Made by a program: the position numbers and the translations under genes | The notes under the pieces: generated by a model | The model's database searches: none | Seen by the model: only the letters and a program-made list of their open reading frames with translations | What the model was told of the DNA's origin: nothing | Assembly (NCBI GenBank): GCA_965112735.1 | Contig: OZ218951.1 | Location: 2,852,001-2,916,000 of the forward strand | DNA from: Phaeosaccion multiseriatum | Taxonomy: Eukaryota > Protista > Ochrophyta, other classes | Direction: 5' to 3' | Length of the DNA: 64,000 nucleotides | Part shown: positions 7,987 to 34,994 of the stretch, piece by piece | How the letters are laid out: every line of letters starts with the position of its first letter | How positions within the stretch are numbered: the stretch's first letter is position 1

Positions 7987-9665
7987 GGAGGAGGGAAGAG
8001 GAGGAGGAGGAGGAGGAGGAGGAGGAGGAGGAGGAGGAGGAGGAAAGAACACAGGCCAGATACAAACACATGTCAGGGAGCAACACTACAAATAGACGCT
8101 ACTATGTACTTTCTCATGTCTCTTGTCATACGGCTGCTGCTGCTTCCGCAGTACCGCCAACTGTGTCACCCACTACTGCGGCTGTATCGCCAACTGCTGC
8201 TGCTGCTGCCTCACCCTCTTGGCGTTCTCTACGAACTTCTTCTCGTTGTCGTTGAGCGTCCTTCTGGGTCTGGCCTTGCTGAGTGCGAGGAGAGCGTACT
8301 TGTCATCAAGCATCACCTGCACCTCTGACACAATACCGTTCACCTGCACAAGAGGGCAAGTGCATTTATTGCGCAGAAAGGATATGAGAGAGAGTAAGAG
8401 GGGGTTCATAGCGTTGCAATACAGACAGGAGGGAGAAACAGAAAGAGATGAGGAAGAGAGAGAGAGGGAGGTTGACAGAGAGAGCGGGTGCTGCTGGGAG
8501 GGGAAGAAACATGATTCACCACGGAAAACAGTTCTATGGTTGAGAGAGAAGAGGGAAGAGGCCCCACCTCACCTCAACTTACTGGCTGACTCACTCAAAT
8601 CACTCACTCACTCACTCACTCACTCACTCACTCACTCACTCACCCACCCACCCCCCCACCCACCCCCCCACCCACCCATTCCGTCCCCTCCCTCCTGCCC
8701 CCTCCTCCCTCCCTCACTCACCTGTTCAAGCTGCAGCCGCCCTCTTGTAGTCTTTGGGACAGACTCCAGCTCCGCAGCTGTCACCAAATGCAGTACCCCT
8801 CGCCCCGCCTTGTCGGTGCTCGCTGCTGTGTGGTCCATCGTGCTACTTGGTCTCGTCTCCCTCTGTCTCCCCCCTCCTCCTCCCCCCGAAGTAGAAGCAG
8901 AAGCCGAACCCTCGTTGTACTCTGCCGCCTTCCCTCGAACAGGACGAGAGTCTCGACTTCGCGCTCTCGCTCTCTGTGTTGCGGGGGCGGTCGCAGCGGT
9001 AGTAGTAGTAGCAGCAGTAGCAGCGGCGGCTACGGCATTATCCCCAGGCAAATGCTGCGGCAAGGCCTTGTGCATGTAGTCTAGATCATGCTGCTGCTGC
9101 TCCACGAAGGGAACGAGGGCCTTGAGCTGCTGTAGGCTGTTCTGCTCGTCCAACAGTGCCCTTCGGAGACCGTCCATGCGGTGCTCGAGCTGCGTGACTG
9201 CGGGCTGCAGAGAGGCCAGATCCGCGCCCAACCTCCTATTGAGGGAAGTCTCTCGATCCTCTCCGGCCTCTGTGGGTGGTTGGGGTGGCGCGCTTGCTGT
9301 AGCCTCGACCACTGGAAGGAGGCTCAGGAGGCGAGTCAGTTGGCGAGCGTCGGCGTCTGAGGCCACGGAAAACAAAGTGGGACAGGAGTAGCAATGGAGG
9401 AGAGCGAGTGTGATGGGGGCGGAGGAGAACGCAGGCGGTGAGCTGAGGGAGAGGAGGAAGCGGCAAAGGGCAAACATGTGGCTTCGAAATTAGAAGAAGA
9501 AAAAGGGGGTGTGGGGCACTTACCGAGAGATTTGACCATGGCAGCGAAGCTCTCCACAAGAGGGGACGGACCCTCATCCGTGGCCACGACCTCGCTTCCT
9601 CCTCTTCTTGCGGCGTCTGCTGTTGGTACATCGCCGCCTTGGTAGCCCCCACTCCCGGTCATCAT
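7413..9665 (-). CDS. SKA1: Spindle and kinetochore-associated protein 1-like, 5 exons
   Basis: N-terminal coiled coil; VTAAELESVPKTTRGRLQLEQ|VNGIV...KYALL; FLTELE; C-terminal TLRHLRRIRAVRVSGGVMTYAVVEG*, resembling the SKA1 microtubule-binding domain; GT-AG junctions in frame. Confidence 0.7.
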
Positions 9666-9765
9666 GGTTTTGTAGGGTCGATCAAATGCCCCAATGTTCG
9701 CGTGTTGATGCTCGCCCTCACAAATCACAAATGGGATATCCAAATGGAGTCTCACAGCACACAAA

Positions 9766-23267: not shown

Positions 23268-26200
23268 ATGTCCAGTGACTCGAGACGACGGAGGAGGAGT
23301 CCTACTTTGGAGCGAGACGAAGACGCGGCGTTTAAACCAGCACCTCCTCCTTCTTTTCTCTCAAAAGGGCTTGACGAAGGCAGAGTACCGTCCACCCACT
23401 CGCTACTCCCGCCCCCCTCGCCGCCACCACCGCGGCATAGCCACGAGGAGGGTCTCTCTGTCATTGCACGGCACATTAAGCGCTTCCGGGAGGAGCCACC
23501 GCGGTCTGCCGAGGAGAGGAGAAAGTCGCGGGGGGCAGGAGCAGCACCAGGAGACGAGTTTTGGTGGATTAGTGGCCGGAAAGGGGTGCCCGCGGGGCAT
23601 GGAGAGGGGTATGGGGAGAAGAGGGCTGGAGGCCAGCAAGGTGGGGTCCAATGGGGGCAGGGAGACGAGGGTGGTGGCGGTGGTGGCGGTGGTGGTGATG
23701 GTAGAAAGGGGGCGCCAGAAGCGAGGAAGAGGGGCACCGTCTATCGCTATAGAGACGCGGTGTCGTCTTCTGATCATAGCGAGGAGGAGGACGTCGACGA
23801 AGACTACGTGGAGGAGACGGAGGGGGGAACGGGGGCAGGGGCCGAAGCGGAGGGTGTGGGAGGCGAGCCCCTCTTCTCTCTTGCCGCTGCGCCGCAAGAG
23901 CCGCCAGCCCGCATCAAAGAAGAAGAAGAGGAGGAGGAAAAGGGCAGCACTGCTTGGGCACGTTTGATCGAGAGGCACAGGCGTGTGCGAACAGCAGAGG
24001 CACAGCCATCATCCAGTGGGGGTGGAGAGGGCCTTCTGCTGTCATCGGAAGACTTAGTCACCGCCATTGGTGGTGGCCCCGTGGCCCCTGCGCCAGCATC
24101 TCGGTGTGAAGGGGCAGCAGGAAGGGGAGGGCGGCGAAGAGGCGGGGTTGGTGGTGGAGGAGGGTGGGAAGGCAGTCGTAATGACACTGAGACCGAGACC
24201 GACACCGGAGACCAGGCTCACGCCACGCCAACACCCTCCCTTGATGTGGACGTTTCATCGTCTCTATCGCGGCTAGACCGTCGAGCCAGTCTAGTGCTGA
24301 AGCAGTGTAGTGCTCTTCTGTCGAGCGGCAGCGACGAGAATGACAATCTGTCCGAAAATGAGGAGGACTGGCGTCACAATGGCGACGAATACGATGATGA
24401 AGAGAGCCGGAAGGACCCTGGCTGGGAGGAGGCCAAGGGATTGGGATTAGGATCGGGATTGGAGAGGAGTGAGTACTACTCAAAGATGCTCGGAACGGAG
24501 GGGAAAGATGACGACCTGGTGCGAGCTTCCCCGGCCAACGACGAGGCTGGGGGGGGGGTGGAGCATGGGAGAAACCCTACCACGGACAGGGTTAGTGCCA
24601 CTACCAATGCTGCTGCGGCCTTCTCGGAGAACACACAAAGGATGTTGGACGCCCTGCTGCCCTGTGTACCACCAACTGCTGCTGCTGCTGCTGCTGGAGG
24701 AGGAGGAAGCACAGTGTTTTCTTGTTCAAGGCAAAGCTACAGCAGCCAGACCACCCCTACCTCATGTGATGTTGCCGCCGCGGTGGAAGAGGCCGTGACA
24801 GCCGTGGCAAGAGGAGGGCAGGCGGCGGAAGCGGAGGAGAGAGACGTAAGCAGCTTGTATGCCGAACTACAAGCTGCTCTCCGCAGCAGCGTAGGAGAGG
24901 GGGAGGCGAGGGAGGAGGGTGATCAGCTGAAGGAGGAGCATGCAGCTACGGCGCGACCAGGCTTGTTTTCGTATACGCCGCCTGCTTTACAACAGAGTGG
25001 CTATGGGAAGGAAGCAACAGTGGAAGACGACGAGGAGGACGAGGAGGAGGGGGGGGGGGGACGATGAGAAGGAGGAAGTGGAGAAAGGAATTTCCGCGTC
25101 CTCAGGAGCTGCAGGAGCAGGAGCATCAGGAGCAGCCACAGCAGGCCTGCTGGAGCATGAACAGCGAGAGCAGCAGCAGCAGCAGGAGGAGGAGCAGGAG
25201 CAGGAGCAGGAGGAGCAGGAGCAGGAGCAGGAGAAGGAGGGGAAGGGCGTGGAGGAGGGGGAGGGTGTGAAGGAGGGAAAGGAGTGGAAGGAGGGCGTGG
25301 AGGGTGTGAAGGAGGGGAAGGAGGATATGAAGGATGGGAAGGAGGAGGAGGAGGAGGAGGAGGAGGAGGAGGAGGAGGAGGAGGAGGAGGAGCTACCGAC
25401 TGTGCTGTCTCCGAGCAACAGCGTGGGCGGCTTGAGCATGACCTCTGCGGGGTCCGAGAGCCCCCGGGGGGCGATGATTCGCATCAGCCACGAGGTGGTG
25501 ATACAAAGTCTGTCTCGTTCACCAAGTCCGTCTTTGTCGCCCTCCTCCTGTCGAGGGGGAGACAAGAGTGGCTTCTCGCTTTACGAGGTAACCAGTGGTA
25601 GTAGTGGTGGTGACAGCGGTGGTGTTATTGGCAGTGGAAGTGGCAGTGGTGGCGTGCACAATGCTGGTCAGGGTGCTGACACGGAAGATCCAACGGGGCA
25701 GCAGCAGGAGGGGGGGAAGCAGGAGCAGGAGGATGGACACCAGCAGCAGGAGGAGGATCAGGGCGTGGAGGAGAGCAAGGGGGCGGACTTGGAGATCGCA
25801 ACGATGCTCGTCAATTGTGGCGTTGACTTCCAAGATCCAAAGTCGCAGCCAACGTCCCCTCTCTTGGAGGCCGAAGTTACAGTGGGAGCAGCAGCGCAAC
25901 GACCATCCACAGGAGGAGGAGGAGGAGGAGGAGGAGGAGCTAGTGGAGAGGAAGAGCGACAAACAGGAGGGGGAAGAGGAGGAGCTGCTAGCGGAGAGAG
26001 GATGGGTAGCGGAGAGGAAGAGGCTATGATTAAGACGCAGCAGGAGGACGAGCAGCACGAGCACAAGAAGGAGAGCGTACTGACCGAAGCGCTGCGTGTC
26101 ACTACTTCGCTCGTGCAGGACCATCACGATGACGAGGATAGTGATGCGCTGCAGATGCAGATGCTGACTCTCTCTCTCTCCTTGTCTCTGACTCCGTCGC

Positions 26201-26739
26201 CCTCACCGTCGGCGTCGCCATCCGGACTACTTCTCCCCTCCTCGCCGCCTGCTGCTATATCACCAACTGTTGCATCTGCGTCTGCGTCGCGAAAGACATC
26301 ATGGCACGAGTGGGCGGAGGGGAAGGGGGGAGGTGGTGGCCCTGATGTCGGGTATGGTGATGCCGCGCCACTCGGAGAAAACCAGGAGGAGGAGGAAGAA
26401 GAAGAGGAGGAGGAGAAGGAGAAGGAGGAGGAGGAGGAGGAGGAGGAGGAGGAGGAGGAGGAGGAGGAGGAGGAGGAGGAGGAGGAGGAGGAGGAGGAGG
26501 AGGAGGAGGAGGAGGAGGATGAGGACGACGAGGAGAAGGCAGGAGGAGAGAGAGATGAGAAGGGTAGTGCTCTCCTCCCGACGACTCCTCAGCAAAAGAG
26601 CGAGGAGGGGAGGCGAGGCGACGCCGGGGTCACAGAAGACGACGACGACGACTTCTCGGATGATGTCATTGTGCAGATGCTGTCCAAGCGTGTCCACGAG
26701 CTCGAGAGGGCCATTCAAGACCTGAGCCTGAAAGCCTGA
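23268..26739 (+). CDS. PROSER3-like low-complexity protein; two overlapping ORFs joined by a 1-nt shift at the G12 run 25049-25060
   Basis: N-terminal IARHIKRFREEPPRSAEER...FWW and C-terminal FSDDVIVQMLSKRVHELERAI resemble the two conserved blocks I recall for PROSER3; acidic composition is continuous across the shift. Confidence 0.55.
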
Positions 26740-28109: not shown

Positions 28110-31100
28110 CTACTCCCCTCCGGTCTGGCCGTCGCTGCCCCTGCCGCTGCCGCTTGCGCTGAACCTCGCAGACTCCGTCCTCTGCAGACTTGCCTCGTCC
28201 CCTTCCTCCACGCCAGAGAGACGCACGGGAGGATGCCCTCCGGTACCACTGGCGGCACCATCGGCACTGCCAGCCCTCGCCTCTTCGGTGTTATCAAAGT
28301 GCTGCTGCTCCACTCCTGCACCGGAGAGGGCTCGCATGGGGGAGTCCACCCCTCCTCCTCCTCCTCCTCCGAGCTCGACACCATGACCCATCGCCCAGTC
28401 TCCCCCCTGCGCCTGCTGCACCGCCACTGCAGGCGGGCCCGTTGCCACTGCCACTGCCGGCTCTCCCCACTTCTCGGGCAGGGGGGCTGGAGAGGCGGGC
28501 GTAGCTTTGCTGGCCAACCCGGCGGGGACGGACACAGAGTGCTTGGCCTTGGAAGCCTCCAGCGGCGCCTGCTGCCTCGCACCTCCTCCCCTTCGCTGAT
28601 AGTCGGAGAAGATGGGTTCCTCCATCATTGCCTTGCGGTCGACTTCGATGAATGAGTTGCGTCGGTTGTCGTGCAGAGAAGCGTTCAGGGAGCGTATCAT
28701 GCTGCTGCCGCGGCGGTTGGCGGAGTGGCCTGCAGTGGTGTGGTGCTTAAGGGCGCTGCTGCCCCCTGCTGTTCGCGCAATACAACACCAGAAGAAAAAA
28801 ATAAAATAAAAAAGAGAGGAGGAAGGTTGGGTATGTGGGGGAGAGAATGAAGAGTGAGAAAGCATGCGCAAGAGAAGAGACGAGAGAATTGTAGAGAAGA
28901 GCGAACTCAACCCCCCCCCCCCCCCCGCTCCACCCCTACTACTAGACGAGCTCAATTTCCATTTCCTTCCCTCTGCCCAGAGTGTAATGGTGCCATCCAT
29001 GCCATGCCGTGCACAGCACAGCAAAGTCAAAACAAACAACGAGTACGTAAAGACGTACGAAACCTACCTCGACCGTCAAAGGCATCGTTGGCGACTTCGG
29101 CCTCCTCGCCAAAGTTATTGAAGCTTGTCGAGCGATTCTGCACGCTCTTCTGCCTAGCAAGGAGCCGGTCCAGATGCACCTGCTGCTGCTCCCGCTGCTC
29201 TTGCTGGCCCTCCGTCAACGCTCGACCACTACCGGTGGTGCTGTACTCAACATCTCCTCCTCCCCGATGCCCTCCGCCCACGACTCCCTTTCCCCACCCT
29301 GCTCGCTCCATTTCGGAGGTAGGGCTCGCAACGGTGCTGGCACGCCGATGCGAAGGCCCGTTTAGGTTGCGGAAGTGCCTCGGCTGCCGAGCGTGTCTCG
29401 AGCCACTTCCCACGTGGCTACTCAGGCTGGTGACCTGCCCTCCTCCGTTGTCGACGCTCTTGACACCGAGCATCAGTTCCAGGATTGGCAGCGACAGACG
29501 ACCGTTGACTGCCACCACGTCAGGGAACTTGGTGCAGGTCTTCTCCCAAATGTGGTGGGCCAGAACTATAACGGGATGGGTTCGTTGCATTGGGGTGGGT
29601 ACGGTTGGTACGGTTAGGCTGGTTTGGGTGTGGTGTGGCATGGCGTTTGATTGGGTTGGGTTGGGTTGGGTAAGGTGAAGTTGGGTTGGGTTGGGTTGGG
29701 TTGGGTTGGGTTGATTGATTTGAGGTGAGTGTGAGGGGTGAGACAATGCTTTTGAAAGCATGCGCCAAAGATCTGAGACTACTATCTTGTCGACGACAAG
29801 ATAGAGCAGCAGCACGACGCGAGCACAAAACAAAAAAAGCTCCAGCTCACCCATAACTAACTGTCCAGCCCCCCCTCCACCTCTCGCCCCCTTACCTCGG
29901 TACTCCTCGTCCTCACTGAGCTCCATCCCCTCCAACATGGACACGATGGTGCTCGCTGGTGCGTTAGGCTTCTTCTTAAACATTCCAAAGACGCTTCGGC
30001 TGTGGCTAGCGCCCGACAAGTCTCGACCATGCCTCACCGCCTCCGCATCAGCGACCGCCACCGCTAACCGTCCCTCTTCGATCGCCTCGTTTTGCATGTC
30101 CCCGACGGCAGCACCACCAGCAGCCGTTGCGAAAGACATGCCCGCCCGCTCAGGGCGAGGGAGGTATTCGTCGGTTCCGTCTCCAGCTTTGAAGTCTCCT
30201 TCCAGCCGGGTGGGGTCGTACTCCTTCACCGCTTGCTCTCCTCCGAGAAGATAGGCGCCGCCCTGTTCGCTGTCTGCTAACTTCTCTCCCGCGTCGGCTG
30301 GGGGGAGGAGGCCCTCGTTCTGGCGGATGAGAAGGCGCTTGGTCTCCTCGAGGGTCTCTTCGCGCTCCTTACGGGTCAGGGGGCGGCCAATTTCTTCCCC
30401 GTCGTGCTGGTGCTTGGAGCCTGAGGGAAATAAAAGGGAACAAAAAGGGAACGGGGGGGAAATATGAGTGAAGGAAGGGATGAGAGGATGACGCACTGGA
30501 TCAAGTGAATGACGAACTGCACACACAAGAGTAAGTTAAATGGAAGTTTATTGAGGGAAGGGACAAGGGATTGGCGGAATGAAAAAGTGAATAACGGAAT
30601 GAATGGAAGAGTAAATGGTAATGGATGAAATGGGCAGTGACAAGGAAAGGGTAAAAAATGAAGCAAGACTCTCACGAACAGGAAGAGACGAAAGGGACCC
30701 ACCCCTCCCCACCCCCCGCCTCCCCTCTCTAACTCCTGTCTCTTCTCGCGCACACACACACACACACACACACATACACACACACGCTCACTAACCGGAG
30801 TTGCCGTAGTTTTCTTCGGTCGTGTTTCGAATGACGCGCAGCACTCGGGACAGTCGCAGGACACGCAGGAGCACCACCGCCCCCGCTGCGTGCACGGCAG
30901 ACTGACTCACTCCCTTGAGGATCACGGTCAACACAAGCATGACAGCGCTGGGGTGGGGGAGAGATTCGTGGCCAGGCGCATGGGGAATAGGAGTGGGAAT
31001 GTAAGAGGGCAGGTGGGTGGGTACGTGAGTGGGTAGGTGTGGGGAGGAAGAAGCCTGACGACGAAGGCGACAATGACGACAAGAACAACGCCAACAGAAA

Positions 31101-34100
31101 CAACAACATAAAGCAAACAAATCTTACCAAAAAAGCACCCAACACAACGGAAGTGGTGTACCCTCCGAACAGCCACACAAACGCATCATATCATGTACCC
31201 CCACTACGCACCTGACGAGCACGACAAGAATGTCAATGCTCACGAGCTTGTCTCTGAAGAGCAACACATTGCAGAAGCCAGTCACGTACACCGTGAGAGC
31301 CGCCTCCAAGACAAAGAGCGACACCAGCGCCACCTCGGTGTAGAAGATCCAGTTGTCGTTGAGCCCACCGTACTCGTCGTCCTGGTTCTTGACGGTGTCG
31401 GTGTTGAAAGCGATGATGAAGAAGTCGAGAACCACGAGCAGGTTCACGGCCTCCACGGTGTAGGGGTGCCGCAGGAATTGCCTATTGTGTAGCGGTGGAT
31501 CGCATTGGGAGGATGGGTAGGTGGGTGTGGGAAAGAGAGGGAAAGAGGGGGACGGGGGTAGGGAGCGCTTAATATAAAAAATAGAAAAATAAGAAAAAAG
31601 TAAAAACAGCCTGCCTCCACCTCCCTCCCCCCTCCCCCCCCCCTTCCCTCCATCCCACTTACGCGATCCTCTCCTTGATGGGGACGGCGTCGTTCCTCCA
31701 CTGCGCCAGTCGGGTGGCCTGTTTGAGCGTGGGGGGTACGGCTCTGACGTGGAACTTGCGCTGCTGCTTGGCGAGTGCCTCGGAGATGCGCCTTCGGTCC
31801 ACCATGTCGCCAACGTGCGTCACCATGGTGAAGGCGGGGATGACCTGTGTGTGTGCGTGTGTGTGTGTGTGTGTGCGTGTGTGCGTGTGTGCATGCGTGT
31901 GTGTGTGTAGGTGGAGGAAGGGTGCACACAGGGGAGGACGGGGGTTGAGTGACGTCACACAGGGGAGAAGGGGGGTTGAGTGGGGTTGGAACAGGGCGGG
32001 AGGGGCAGGGCCTCAGTGGTGTGTGCGCTCATAGGTTGGGTGTGAAAGTTATTACACACCACGCAGGAGCCACAGTTACATATTGACCCATCACCACATT
32101 TAACCCGAAACAAGTCCCCCCCCCCCCCCCACACACACACACACCATTCCCTAAGATTTACGTCTCATACATTCTTTCATCGCTCCCTCTCTCTTCTTAC
32201 CTGCGGCAGTGTGAGGAAGTAAGTGGCGAGACTGAAGAGGATGGAGAACACCGATACGGCCAGCTCCGTCTTGCCCAAGTCACCGGAGAACTGCACCAGC
32301 AGGGCCACATTGAGTGCCAGCACAAACTGCAGGAATTGAAGACCAGAGATGACGAGCTCGGGCTTGCCGAACCAGAACATGCGCTTCTGGGACATGACGC
32401 CGTCGGAGACAACGGCCATGTCCACTTCGCCGGAGCCAGTGACGGGGCCGTGGAGGATCTCGCCATTGACGAAGTTGTTGTAGATGTGCGCCATCTGCGT
32501 GACAGGAGTGAGTGGAGGGTGGGTGGGTGGGTGAGTGAGCTGGTCCTGTCTTGTTGCGTTGGTCATGTAATGGGGAAAAGAGATGGAACCACATTATTGT
32601 TGTAACAGACTTTGGATGGCACATAAGCGCACTCTCCTCTTCCCTCTCTCCTTTTTGTAATGTCGACGTTATCATCCGTAGCATCGGTGTGATATCCGTA
32701 CCTTGGCATAGATGGCGAGGGTGGCGACGACTACAACGCATCCGCAGAGAGAGAAGAGAGCGAGCCAGCGAAACGAACCCTCATAGGCAGGGATGAGGCC
32801 CTTGATGTACATGTCGAGTGTCAAGACCCAGGCCAGCGCTACCCACACGCCCTCATGCACCTCGACAAGGTCCAGGGCAACGTGCTGAAAGAGGAGGGGA
32901 GGAGCGGAGAGGGAGAGTGGTGAGCGAGGAGGGGATGGGGGGGGGGTTGGAGGGCCAGACATGTAGGGAGGTAGAGAGGCAAGAAAGAAGGGAAGACACA
33001 GACACACAGGCGGGCAAGACAGAGCAACCACCTAACCAACCAAGCAACCAACGAAGCAGCCAACTCAACTAACCTGCTTGCACTTCTTGAGGTAGGTGGC
33101 GAAGTGGAAGTTGGCGGGCAGGCCCATGACCTTGATAAAGTGCAGGCGCAGCTCATGGTAGGACACGTGGTCGGCAAGCTCCCTCCAACGGCGGTACAGC
33201 TTGGGGTGACGTACGATGAGGAACAAGACCCTGCAAGGAGAGGGAGGGGAACAGGGGTGGGTGGGTGGGTGGGTGAGGGGCAAGGCAAGGGCAGGGTTCG
33301 GCAGGGTCCGTAGGGAGAGGGAGAGAGACAGCATGCCTGCATACACACTGGGGAAGGTCATAGTGTACCTGAAGATGTTCATTTGCTCGATCTCCTGGCG
33401 GGTCATGATGCCCATTTGTTCGGCGGTGGTTCTGTGGTGCGCCTTGAGAGTTTTATAGCGCCGCACGTCGATCTGCTCGTAGAGGTCCCAGCAGCGGGAG
33501 ATCTGCAGAGGGCAGGGCGCAGATGTGTGGGGGTGTGTGTATATCAGTGTGGTGAGTGGTGAGTGTGTGTGTGTGTGTGTGTGTGAGGAAGAAATGTCGA
33601 TGTCGATATCCTGCATCGCGTTGAAGTGCATCAGCTGAAATTGAAATTCCACACAAACTGAAACTGAATGGAGCTGGTGCGGTAGCAGGCACCGGCGAGG
33701 CCGGCCCGTTGTGAATAGGAGTGGGTTCCTTCTCCCAAACACACTCCACTGGAGGGCGATACATACGAGGGAAGCGAGGGCGTCTCCTAAACGGACTTCC
33801 GCATATGCTCCCTCTTTCCCTGCCGCGATCACCCCACATACGCACGCAACCCACCAGCTCCTTTTCTGCCGTACCGCCACGAGTAGGCCCACCCACCCAA
33901 GCATGGGACCAAAGCAGGCCCATCACAACCCATCCATCCGCCTACCCAACCACCCAAGCACCCACCAAAAACTAACCTGTCGTGATAGCACCACAATGAC
34001 TAGGATGAGAAGGGCGTAAAACATGGCCGAGAGGAAGAGCGTGAAGTGGATGATCTCGAACAAGTGCTTGTCCGTGGGGTTGAGCTTGATGGAAGAGTAG

Positions 34101-34465
34101 TCGGAGATGGCGAAGAGCGCAAAAGCGATGATACCCAGGATGGTGAGCTCCTTGTAGATGCTCTCGACCATTTCCCGCATGTGCCTTTTATGCCGCACCA
34201 GGGCGTCAAGTTGCCGAGTGAGGAACTGGAGCACGAGCACACCGCCGATGGTGAGCACCATCAGGGCATTCCACTGGTTGCTCACACTACCACTCCCACC
34301 CTCATATGCCCCCGCCGCATACGCCATCTGCGGACCAATACCCCCTCCGCCTCCACCTCCTCCGAGTGGTGAGCTGGATGACGGAAGAAGCAGTAGGCCA
34401 AGCTGAAGCGCCGCGGCTGCTGGCACGACCCCCTTCCCGCGCATGGCGCCTACCATGGCAGCCAT
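28110..34465 (-). CDS. MLO-like multi-pass membrane protein fused to a voltage-sensor domain (S1-S4) and a long disordered tail, 11 exons, about 1195 aa
   Basis: MLO motifs IYKELTILGIIAF, IHFTLF, LPANFHFATYL, FWFGKPEL; VSD LVVLD / LFVLE / IDIL / LRVLRLSRVLRVIR. Exons 34465-33977, 33502-33369, 33230-33074, 32884-32702, 32494-32201, 31844-31663, 31481-31212, 30947-30796, 30420-29851, 29565-29068, 28768-28110; all GT-AG, 3588 nt in frame. Confidence 0.8.
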
Positions 34466-34994
34466 TGAACCCTCCCTCCGCAGTCGAACGCGATGCGTAA
34501 GAGCTCTTCCCCCTTGAGCCGCTGGTGCCCCCTTAAATCTTCCGATTTCTCTCCCACTCTCCTTTTCTACCTCTTTATTTCTCGGCTTCAACGCCTTCCC
34601 CCTGTGGAGGTCCCTTCTCTACTCTTGCCCCCTTCCTGGTTGTTCGTTGTCTCCCGCAAGAAGACAAACAGCCGTAGGGCGGAGAATAATGGTTGTGACG
34701 AGAATCGGCCCGTTTAACACATACGCGTTTAAGAGATGATGGCAATGGATGGCAATGGAGATCGATGGCAATGGATGGCATGTACATCTCCACCTTCTCC
34801 TCTAACCAAAAAAACCACACCAGCGCGGGATGGAAAGTCCTGCTTGAAGTGTCCCTCTCACTCAAGCGAAGAGGATGGCGTCAAGTCCAGGTCGCGAGTA
34901 GGCTTTGCGCTGTGTTAGCGTCCCAGCGGTATCTCCTCGTGCGTTTTGGCCCCGAGTTTCCCCTGCCCCTCTCTCGCGTATAAAGGAAGGAGGA

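Follow-up and report, generated by a model that had tools for sequence, protein, structure and literature searches.

Does a single gene of the ochrophyte Phaeosaccion multiseriatum join an MLO-like membrane protein to a voltage sensor, and what might such a sensor do there? The question arises from a stretch of 64,000 nucleotides (the window; contig OZ218951.1 of assembly GCA_965112735.1, positions 2,852,001 to 2,916,000 of the forward strand), in which an earlier note had proposed a voltage-regulated MLO channel, made by in-frame fusion of an MLO-like protein to a voltage-sensor domain (VSD). MLO is agronomically important through mlo powdery-mildew resistance; for decades its molecular activity stayed obscure; Ca2+ conduction is now proposed and contested. 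The fusion itself held up: one gene and one protein carry both domains, as seen in an RNA contig and in homologs that pass the Pfam thresholds. The function of a voltage-regulated channel is something that we infer, and a voltage-modulated MLO-type cation conductance, the most economical reading of the protein, has in our estimate a probability of about 0.5.

Gene model and transcript

The coding region, rebuilt from the sequence, has 11 exons with GT-AG borders and encodes about 1180 aa. Exons 1-8 are each flanked by GT..AG; the basis for the remaining exons is given with them.

28110..34465, minus strand: whole coding region, in-frame model, ATG start at 34465, TAG stop at 28112-28110
34465-33977, minus strand: exon 1
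33502-33369, minus strand: exon 2
33230-33074, minus strand: exon 3
32884-32702, minus strand: exon 4
32494-32201, minus strand: exon 5
31844-31663, minus strand: exon 6
31482..31662, minus strand: intron 6, dividing the MLO half from the VSD half; skipped by an RNA contig (31481-31662, 181, CT..AC)
31481-31212, minus strand: exon 7
30948-31211, minus strand: intron 7, inside the VSD (gene model)
30947-30796, minus strand: exon 8
30420-29896, minus strand: exon 9, exon 8/exon 9 junction in an RNA contig
29565-29068, minus strand: exon 10, exon 9/exon 10 junction in an RNA contig
28768-28110, minus strand: exon 11, predicted; the exon 10/exon 11 junction is the sole one without RNA support

Joined together, exons 1-8 give a stop-free reading frame of 620 aa. 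These exons, the border of exon 6 (..ATCGC followed by GTAAGT) with exon 7 (..ATAG followed by GCAATTC) and the MLO and S1-S4 motifs that had been quoted for them are all present on the minus strand as the earlier note described. Its estimate of about 570 aa for the tail agrees with the model (570), and its total of 1195 aa is corrected to 1180.

Whether both halves are transcribed together was read from a metatranscriptome run (X1), which contains part of the locus from a close relative and was aligned to window positions 28560-34550. One X1 contig of 1988 nt has about 95% identity to the window and is spliced from exon 1 to exon 9 at the predicted sites, with joints 30947 to 31212, 31480/1 to 31662/3, 32494 to 32702, 32884 to 33074, 33229/30 to 33368/9 and 33502 to 33977. 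A second is identical to the window over 29896-30319 and then continues with 11 letters matching 29565-29555, which fixes the junction of exons 9 and 10. Three other runs cover 95-97% of the stretch and carry it unspliced, so they are genomic. The long contig crosses the junction 31663/31481, at which separate or prematurely ending mRNAs would have parted the two halves, and shows no ending before exon 7; in the close relative, therefore, both halves lie on one spliced mRNA. Exon 7 contains no Met and thus cannot open a separate protein. Among the differences listed between the long contig and the window 33 of 40 are synonymous; in the VSD exons the proportion is 10 of 12 (the exceptions being L>V and L>F), and the three differences listed for exon 8 are all synonymous. 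Since the differences are mostly synonymous, purifying selection acts on the MLO half and on the VSD half.

The reading that an MLO-like gene and a VSD gene have been wrongly joined has in its favour that the window alone offers predicted splice sites, with exons 7-8 lying 181 nt beyond exon 6. Set against the RNA contig across the junction and the Met-less exon 7, it is hardly credible, and two homologs considered below bear on it further.

Some observations accompany the gene model. Of the two X1 contigs one matches the window letter for letter (29896-30319) while the other diverges by about 5% (exons 1-9); for the X1 sample this suggests that it contains two strains or haplotypes of the organism. 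Intron 9 (29566-29895, minus strand) is 330 nt long, in frame, stop-free and largely made of CCCAA/CCAAC repeats, and for this reason an open reading frame (ORF) finder returns a single ORF of 499 aa from exon 9, the intron and exon 10; in RNA it is removed by splicing. Several intron ends of the gene have (GT/CA)n microsatellites and poly-G/C runs at or beside them (30736-30796, 31842-31922, 33545-33590 and 32100-32150). Just downstream of the 3' end of the gene a plus-strand ORF of 599 aa (24940-26739) contains a long (CCT)n/(GAG)n tract (26300-26600, read on the minus strand).

The MLO-like half and the voltage sensor

The protein falls into an MLO-like core of seven transmembrane (TM) helices, a linker, the VSD and a long tail. 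The window protein was scanned exon by exon, and whole-protein profile and structure tests use homologs as proxies (P0001, P0008 and P0009, described in the next section).

31827..34288, minus strand: MLO-like 7-TM core, aa 60-425, exons 1-6 (hydropathy, charge count, Pfam, homologs)
31463..31826, minus strand: cytosolic linker, aa 426-486, spanning intron 6 (family alignments)
30827..31462, minus strand: VSD S1-S4, aa 487-610, exons 7-8 (Pfam, PDB profile, homolog models)
30827..30886, minus strand: S4 helix, aa 591-610 (sequence)
28110..30420, minus strand: tail of 570 aa (aa 611-1180), exons 9-11 (RNA junctions exon 8/exon 9 and exon 9/exon 10; composition)
30320..30376, minus strand: post-S4 helix, aa 636-654, R..L.ET..LL..Q, a weak feature, recognized by eye (window protein, P0001 and P0009)
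29447..29545, minus strand: tail motif, aa 803-835, W..TC..P..AV.G.LS.P.L..MLG, aligned in all members and without a Pfam match

Hydropathy places the seven helices of the core at aa 65-83 (TM1), 102-125 (TM2), 142-160 (TM3), 273-291 (TM4), 300-318 (TM5), 368-390 (TM6) and 399-420 (TM7), preceded by a signal-peptide-like segment (aa 12-30) and with a large cytosolic loop 2 of 112 aa between TM3 and TM4. The core includes the segments KELTILGIIAF (aa 105-115), PANFHFATYL (aa 246-255) and FWFGKPEL (aa 361-368). The last stands just before TM6 and carries the FWF motif of MLO loop 3, which reads FWFG.P or FWLG.P in the homologs; this motif in cytosolic loop 3 is listed for the MLO family (PMC4824068). 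Lys and Arg number 43 in the predicted cytosolic segments versus 6 in the external ones, and because positive charges concentrate in this way the MLO-like half is predicted to have its N terminus outside and its C terminus inside, with S1 running from inside to outside in the canonical sensor orientation.

Against the Pfam Mlo profile (PF03094, gathering score 24 bits) exon 5 alone scores 15.8 bits (E 0.0047, profile positions 341-377 of 483), whereas the homologs P0001 and P0008 exceed the cut-off with 45.5 and 34.7 bits; membership of the Mlo profile is thus found for the family and extends to the window protein by homology. The match of P0008 reaches profile position 445 of 483. No solved MLO structure was detectable by sequence search. 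The half resembles plant MLOs in its seven TM helices, N-out/C-in topology, large loop 2, FWF in loop 3, conserved stretch after TM7 and disordered tail. Plant MLOs have four invariant extracellular Cys and a C-terminal calmodulin-binding helix with an invariant Trp. Here the predicted extracellular loops contain no Cys (the only Cys are at aa 167, 258, 307, 309 and 550, compared with the four invariant ones of land plants in extracellular loops 1 and 3), so that we call the protein MLO-like rather than a land-plant-type MLO. It further differs in that the first extracellular loop is short, the Trp of the calmodulin-binding domain is not evident and the post-TM7 helix is followed by an inserted VSD.

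The linker between TM7 and S1 is basic (66 aa in the hydropathy layout) and is the most conserved stretch of the family in the alignments, with the family-invariant motif VG-D/E-x-VDRR..SEAL.KQQR.F...PP.L.QA. At the place of the plant MLO calmodulin-binding helix it has a conserved basic helix, VDRRRISEALAKQQRKF (aa 434-450), which lacks a conserved Trp.

The quoted segments of the sensor lie at aa 493-503 (S1), 532-542 (S2), 561-569 (S3) and 596-610 (S4). S4, LLRVLRLSRVLRVIR, is without Trp and has an Arg at every third residue (R598, R601, R604, R607 and R610). The charge-transfer centre consists of F536 and E539 in S2 and D563 in S3, with an outer E529 in S2; S1 supplies an acidic residue, D499. 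Against Ion_trans (PF00520, cut-off 25 bits, profile length 241) exon 7 scores 18.8 bits (E 9.7e-4, profile 10-78) and exon 8 14.6 bits (E 0.019, profile 80-112), each singly below the cut-off and the second match consecutive to the first. The unsplit sensors of the homologs pass it, with 33 bits for P0001:430-600 and 32.5 bits for P0009:30-200, and align with profile positions 4-109 only. Atlas features for the VSD give 0.94 to Ion_trans. The profile matches that the earlier note left to be sought are accordingly present for both halves, by way of the homologs, and its account of S1-S4 (five S4 arginines at every third residue, the F..E pattern of S2 and no S5-pore-S6) is borne out by sequence and hydropathy. 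Hydropathy reveals no TM pair of the S5-P-S6 type after aa 610, and the Pfam matches end at profile positions 109-112 of 241. A classical six-TM channel with a missed pore exon is ruled out, since in RNA exon 9 follows immediately upon exon 8.

A profile built from four family VSDs and run against all PDB sequences retrieves voltage sensors exclusively, led by AtTPC1 VSD2 (3e-6), KCNQ3 (4e-6) and Ci-VSP (1.7e-5), followed by the VSDs of Kv2.1, CaV3 and TPC3; exon 7 alone gave no match in a phmmer search of the PDB. AlphaFold2 models were made of two homologs, P0001:40-600 [predicted local distance difference test (pLDDT) 74] and P0009:1-190 (pLDDT 71), not of the window protein. The best structural match of the P0001 model is the Ci-VSP VSD [4g7v, VIA Z 14.2, root-mean-square deviation (r.m.s.d.) 3.6 Å, 130 residues], and Foldseek likewise pairs the P0009 VSD model with Ci-VSP (probability 1.0, template-modelling score 0.70 by target). 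The next-ranked fold matches are mostly sensors of Cav, CatSper, Kv, Nav, TPC and SLC9C1; the VSD of the P0001 model superimposes on that of SpSLC9C1 with Z 11.4 and an r.m.s.d. of 2.3 Å over 110 residues. De novo four-helix bundles also score Z of about 12, and the fold is therefore taken as corroboration, not proof. The whole 561-residue model returned nothing at E <= 1e-3 in Foldseek, and an Atlas shape search with the VSD-only model returned noise.

Could the sensor itself conduct, as an Hv1-like proton channel or an omega-type cation leak, with the MLO domain modulating or localizing it? Like Hv1 and TMEM266, the window protein has a pore-less VSD whose S1 contains an Asp. The mid-S1 Asp (D499) is conserved in four of the six family VSDs, and in a metagenome relative (L006) two S4 positions are occupied by His. 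His at gating-charge positions shuttle protons in engineered Shaker sensors. The Hv1 signature is an S4 RxWRxxR(/K) together with an acidic S1 selectivity residue (PMC10377628). The window S4 lacks the signature and its Trp, which rules out membership of Hv1, and with its five Arg resembles gating VSDs in which the gating pore is occluded; the 7-TM fusion is a further difference, and a coiled coil contiguous with S4 is not evident. In the PDB profile search the Hv1 chimera 3wkv reaches only E 0.008 (best 3e-6), behind TPC1, KCNQ, Ci-VSP, Kv2.1, CaV3 and TPC3. Conduction by the VSD is accordingly very unlikely: of the earlier suggestion of a proton channel, the presence of an Asp in S1 and the missing Trp were both correctly stated, and the absence of RxWRxxR makes the suggestion itself weak.

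The fusion in other genomes

An exhaustive phmmer search of 1.84 billion representatives with exon 5 produced 8 matches, including one spurious, low-complexity sequence (P0007). Two of the matches are long proteins with the same order of parts:

P0001: 832 aa, Chrysoparadoxa australica (ochrophyte stramenopile)
P0008: 1115 aa, TARA metagenome scaffold (L003 6001-9348), one intron-free ORF

Alignment to P0001 takes in aa 41-873 of the window model (33% identity, E 1e-132), alignment to P0008 its aa 51-601 (E 6e-96). In a further locus, L001/L002 of a metagenome eukaryote, a prokaryote-style gene caller had split the gene into P0005 (MLO) and P0013 (identical in sequence to P0009; VSD and tail). 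The DNA between them shows a 62-nt GTAAGT..AG intron within a conserved motif, separating TMVTH from VGDLVDRRR, and because the intron sits inside this motif the two halves are one gene. The single ORF of P0008 and the short intron of L001, added to the RNA contig and the Met-less exon 7, rule out two adjacent genes wrongly joined.

Two further genes were read from DNA. The second Chrysoparadoxa paralog (L004 4301-8863) is annotated as a 261-aa fragment, P0016, and the unannotated DNA downstream contains TM4-7, the linker, the VSD (S1 and S4 seen) and the tail motif, in that order. The intron-rich metagenome contig L006 holds MLO exons, linker, S1-S2, S3-S4 and tail motif, also in order. The collinear MLO-VSD architecture is thus conserved beyond the window in at least five genes, which belong to four further organisms.

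Gly, Ala, Glu and Ser abound in the mostly disordered tail, and no Pfam domain was found in the tails of the four family members scanned. P0008 has an extra region of about 110 aa (aa 1000-1115), folded-looking with alternating strands and PH-like by eye, which is absent in the others and has no Pfam match. Word-index protein searches with P0001, P0005 and the alignment returned almost only the queries with P0009 and P0016, and did not find the window's own protein; metagenome scans for further relatives confirmed none. Within the databases searched the family is rare. It may be wider: in the Atlas the P0001 model aligns with a 102-member, mostly oomycete Mlo cluster (558 aa) at a template-modelling score of 0.60 over residues 42-586, which we treat as a lead only.

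Proposed coupling of the sensor to the MLO domain

Ca2+-permeable channel activity has been reported for plant MLOs (PMC9810639), and models show them as trimers around a central pore (bioRxiv 10.64898/2026.04.10.716904); it is for these reasons that a voltage-modulated conductance is the most economical reading. The likeliest role of the VSD is to regulate the MLO domain, in the manner of SLC9C1. In the mechanism that we propose, S4, with its five Arg facing the centre formed by F536, E539 and D563, would move with membrane potential; the movement would reach the MLO domain by way of the TM7-S1 linker, by way of the post-S4 helix and tail motif, or by both routes; and if MLO domains conduct Ca2+ as reported in plants, a voltage-dependent cation flux would result. 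Direct gating of a Ca2+-permeable pore of the MLO type by the VSD is a tentative proposal, possible and rather doubtful.

Several points weigh against a voltage-modulated conductance. Whether MLO domains are pores at all is still debated (bioRxiv 10.64898/2026.04.10.716904). The RNA comes from a relative in a metatranscriptome rather than from this strain, and its contigs are compatible with additional shorter isoforms. The AlphaFold2 models derive from shallow alignments (pLDDT of about 50 in S4) and are uninformative on domain coupling. Finally, two family sensors are degenerate: the VSD of P0008 lacks the S1 Asp, has two S4 Arg and gives no Pfam Ion_trans match, and that of L006 (~9440-9700) shows D>G in S3 and an S4 that reads R..P..H..H..R.

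The last point is also the chief argument for a module that is mainly structural, an ancestral appendage of the MLO subfamily serving folding, oligomerization, lipid contact or targeting, with voltage sensing absent or incidental. P0008 and L006 have degenerate S4 charges and counter-charges and an altered charge-transfer centre, yet keep the module and its flanking motifs, and the oomycete cluster, as a lead only, aligns over P0001 42-586 without an Ion_trans annotation. From the two degenerate members it follows that the module persists without full sensing charges and, since S4 charges have decayed in two lineages, that it is old and not always a sensor. Set against this, the window gene, L001 and the two Chrysoparadoxa genes have their sensor charges intact and keep four to five S4 Arg/Lys at every third position (4 Arg in P0001; 3 Arg and a Lys in P0009), the F-x-x-E of S2 and the Asp of S1 and S3, with the charge-transfer centre maintained in P0001, P0009 and L004; and the changes in the VSD exons of the window gene are almost all synonymous. 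A mainly structural role is, on this evidence, unlikely, and the charge depletion tempers the claim for the family, not that for the window gene.

Voltage-modulated conductance apart, S4 might act on the cytosolic tail, as in voltage-sensing phosphatases, baring or concealing its conserved motifs for partner binding or trafficking while the MLO domain serves as a scaffold. A short conserved helix comes after S4, and about 190 aa further on every member has a strongly conserved motif; coupling in VSP and SLC9C1 runs through a C-terminal extension of S4 (PMC13095418), which counts on the same side. The tail, for its part, has no recognizable enzyme or binding domain, and conservation is highest in the TM7-S1 linker, the segment that joins VSD and MLO domain. 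We consider control of the tail distinctly unlikely.

The proposed regulation of the MLO domain by the VSD has its closest precedent in SLC9C1, where a VSD lies C-terminal to a transport domain (PMC10620092, PMC6052114); in 2023 SLC9C1 was described as the sole transporter known to be under VSD control (PMC10620092). In both proteins a non-channel transport domain, a charged pore-less VSD and a cytosolic region follow one another in one chain. The window protein differs in its MLO-like 7-TM core in place of the NHE fold, in a disordered tail in place of a cyclic nucleotide-binding domain and in its occurrence in stramenopile algae rather than metazoan sperm; no Na_H_Exchanger or cNMP_binding match was found by Pfam on any exon or homolog. 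The resemblance is one of design only. Ci-VSP and TPTE, the best structural match of the homolog VSDs, likewise pair a pore-less VSD with a heterologous effector, but their VSD is N-terminal and the effector a cytosolic PTEN-like enzyme, whereas here the VSD comes after seven TM helices and no enzyme domain was found. The MLO-EF-hand fusions of algae, oomycetes and Apusozoa (PMC4824068) combine an MLO core with a C-terminal sensor module on the cytosolic side, in their case a soluble Ca2+-binding domain and here a membrane-embedded voltage sensor.

Kusch et al. (2016; PMC4824068) describe MLO fusions with EF-hand, glycosyl hydrolase, RNase H-like, LEA, mechanosensitive channel and zinc finger domains, and MLO-like proteins from outside the plants for which 2-21 TM helices are predicted; a voltage sensor goes unmentioned in the main text. 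Reviews of VSD-bearing proteins contain only channels, Hv1, TMEM266, VSP, SLC9C1 and a protozoan channel-cyclase, and the types of effector driven by S4 are correspondingly few: pore domains, Hv1 itself, a lipid phosphatase, a Na+/H+ exchanger and the channel-cyclase (PMC13095418, PMC10651576). Full-text searches pairing MLO with voltage sensor, or PF03094 with PF00520, found no MLO-VSD protein. A published MLO-VSD architecture was thus not found, while a VSD with a non-pore effector and an MLO with a fused sensor were each known before.

A natural and conserved fusion of MLO and VSD is a Rosetta-stone argument for an MLO domain that is electrogenic or otherwise relevant to voltage. An MLO that could be switched by voltage clamp would be far easier to assay than plant MLOs controlled by receptor kinases or calmodulin, and could open MLO function to direct tests by electrophysiology. 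The charge-depleted sensors of the family offer natural controls, as well as a case study of the decay of VSDs into structural modules. Were the VSD to gate the MLO pore directly, the family would represent a class of voltage-gated channel with a pore unrelated to S5-P-S6, and would provide independent comparative-genomic proof of ion-conducting MLO domains.

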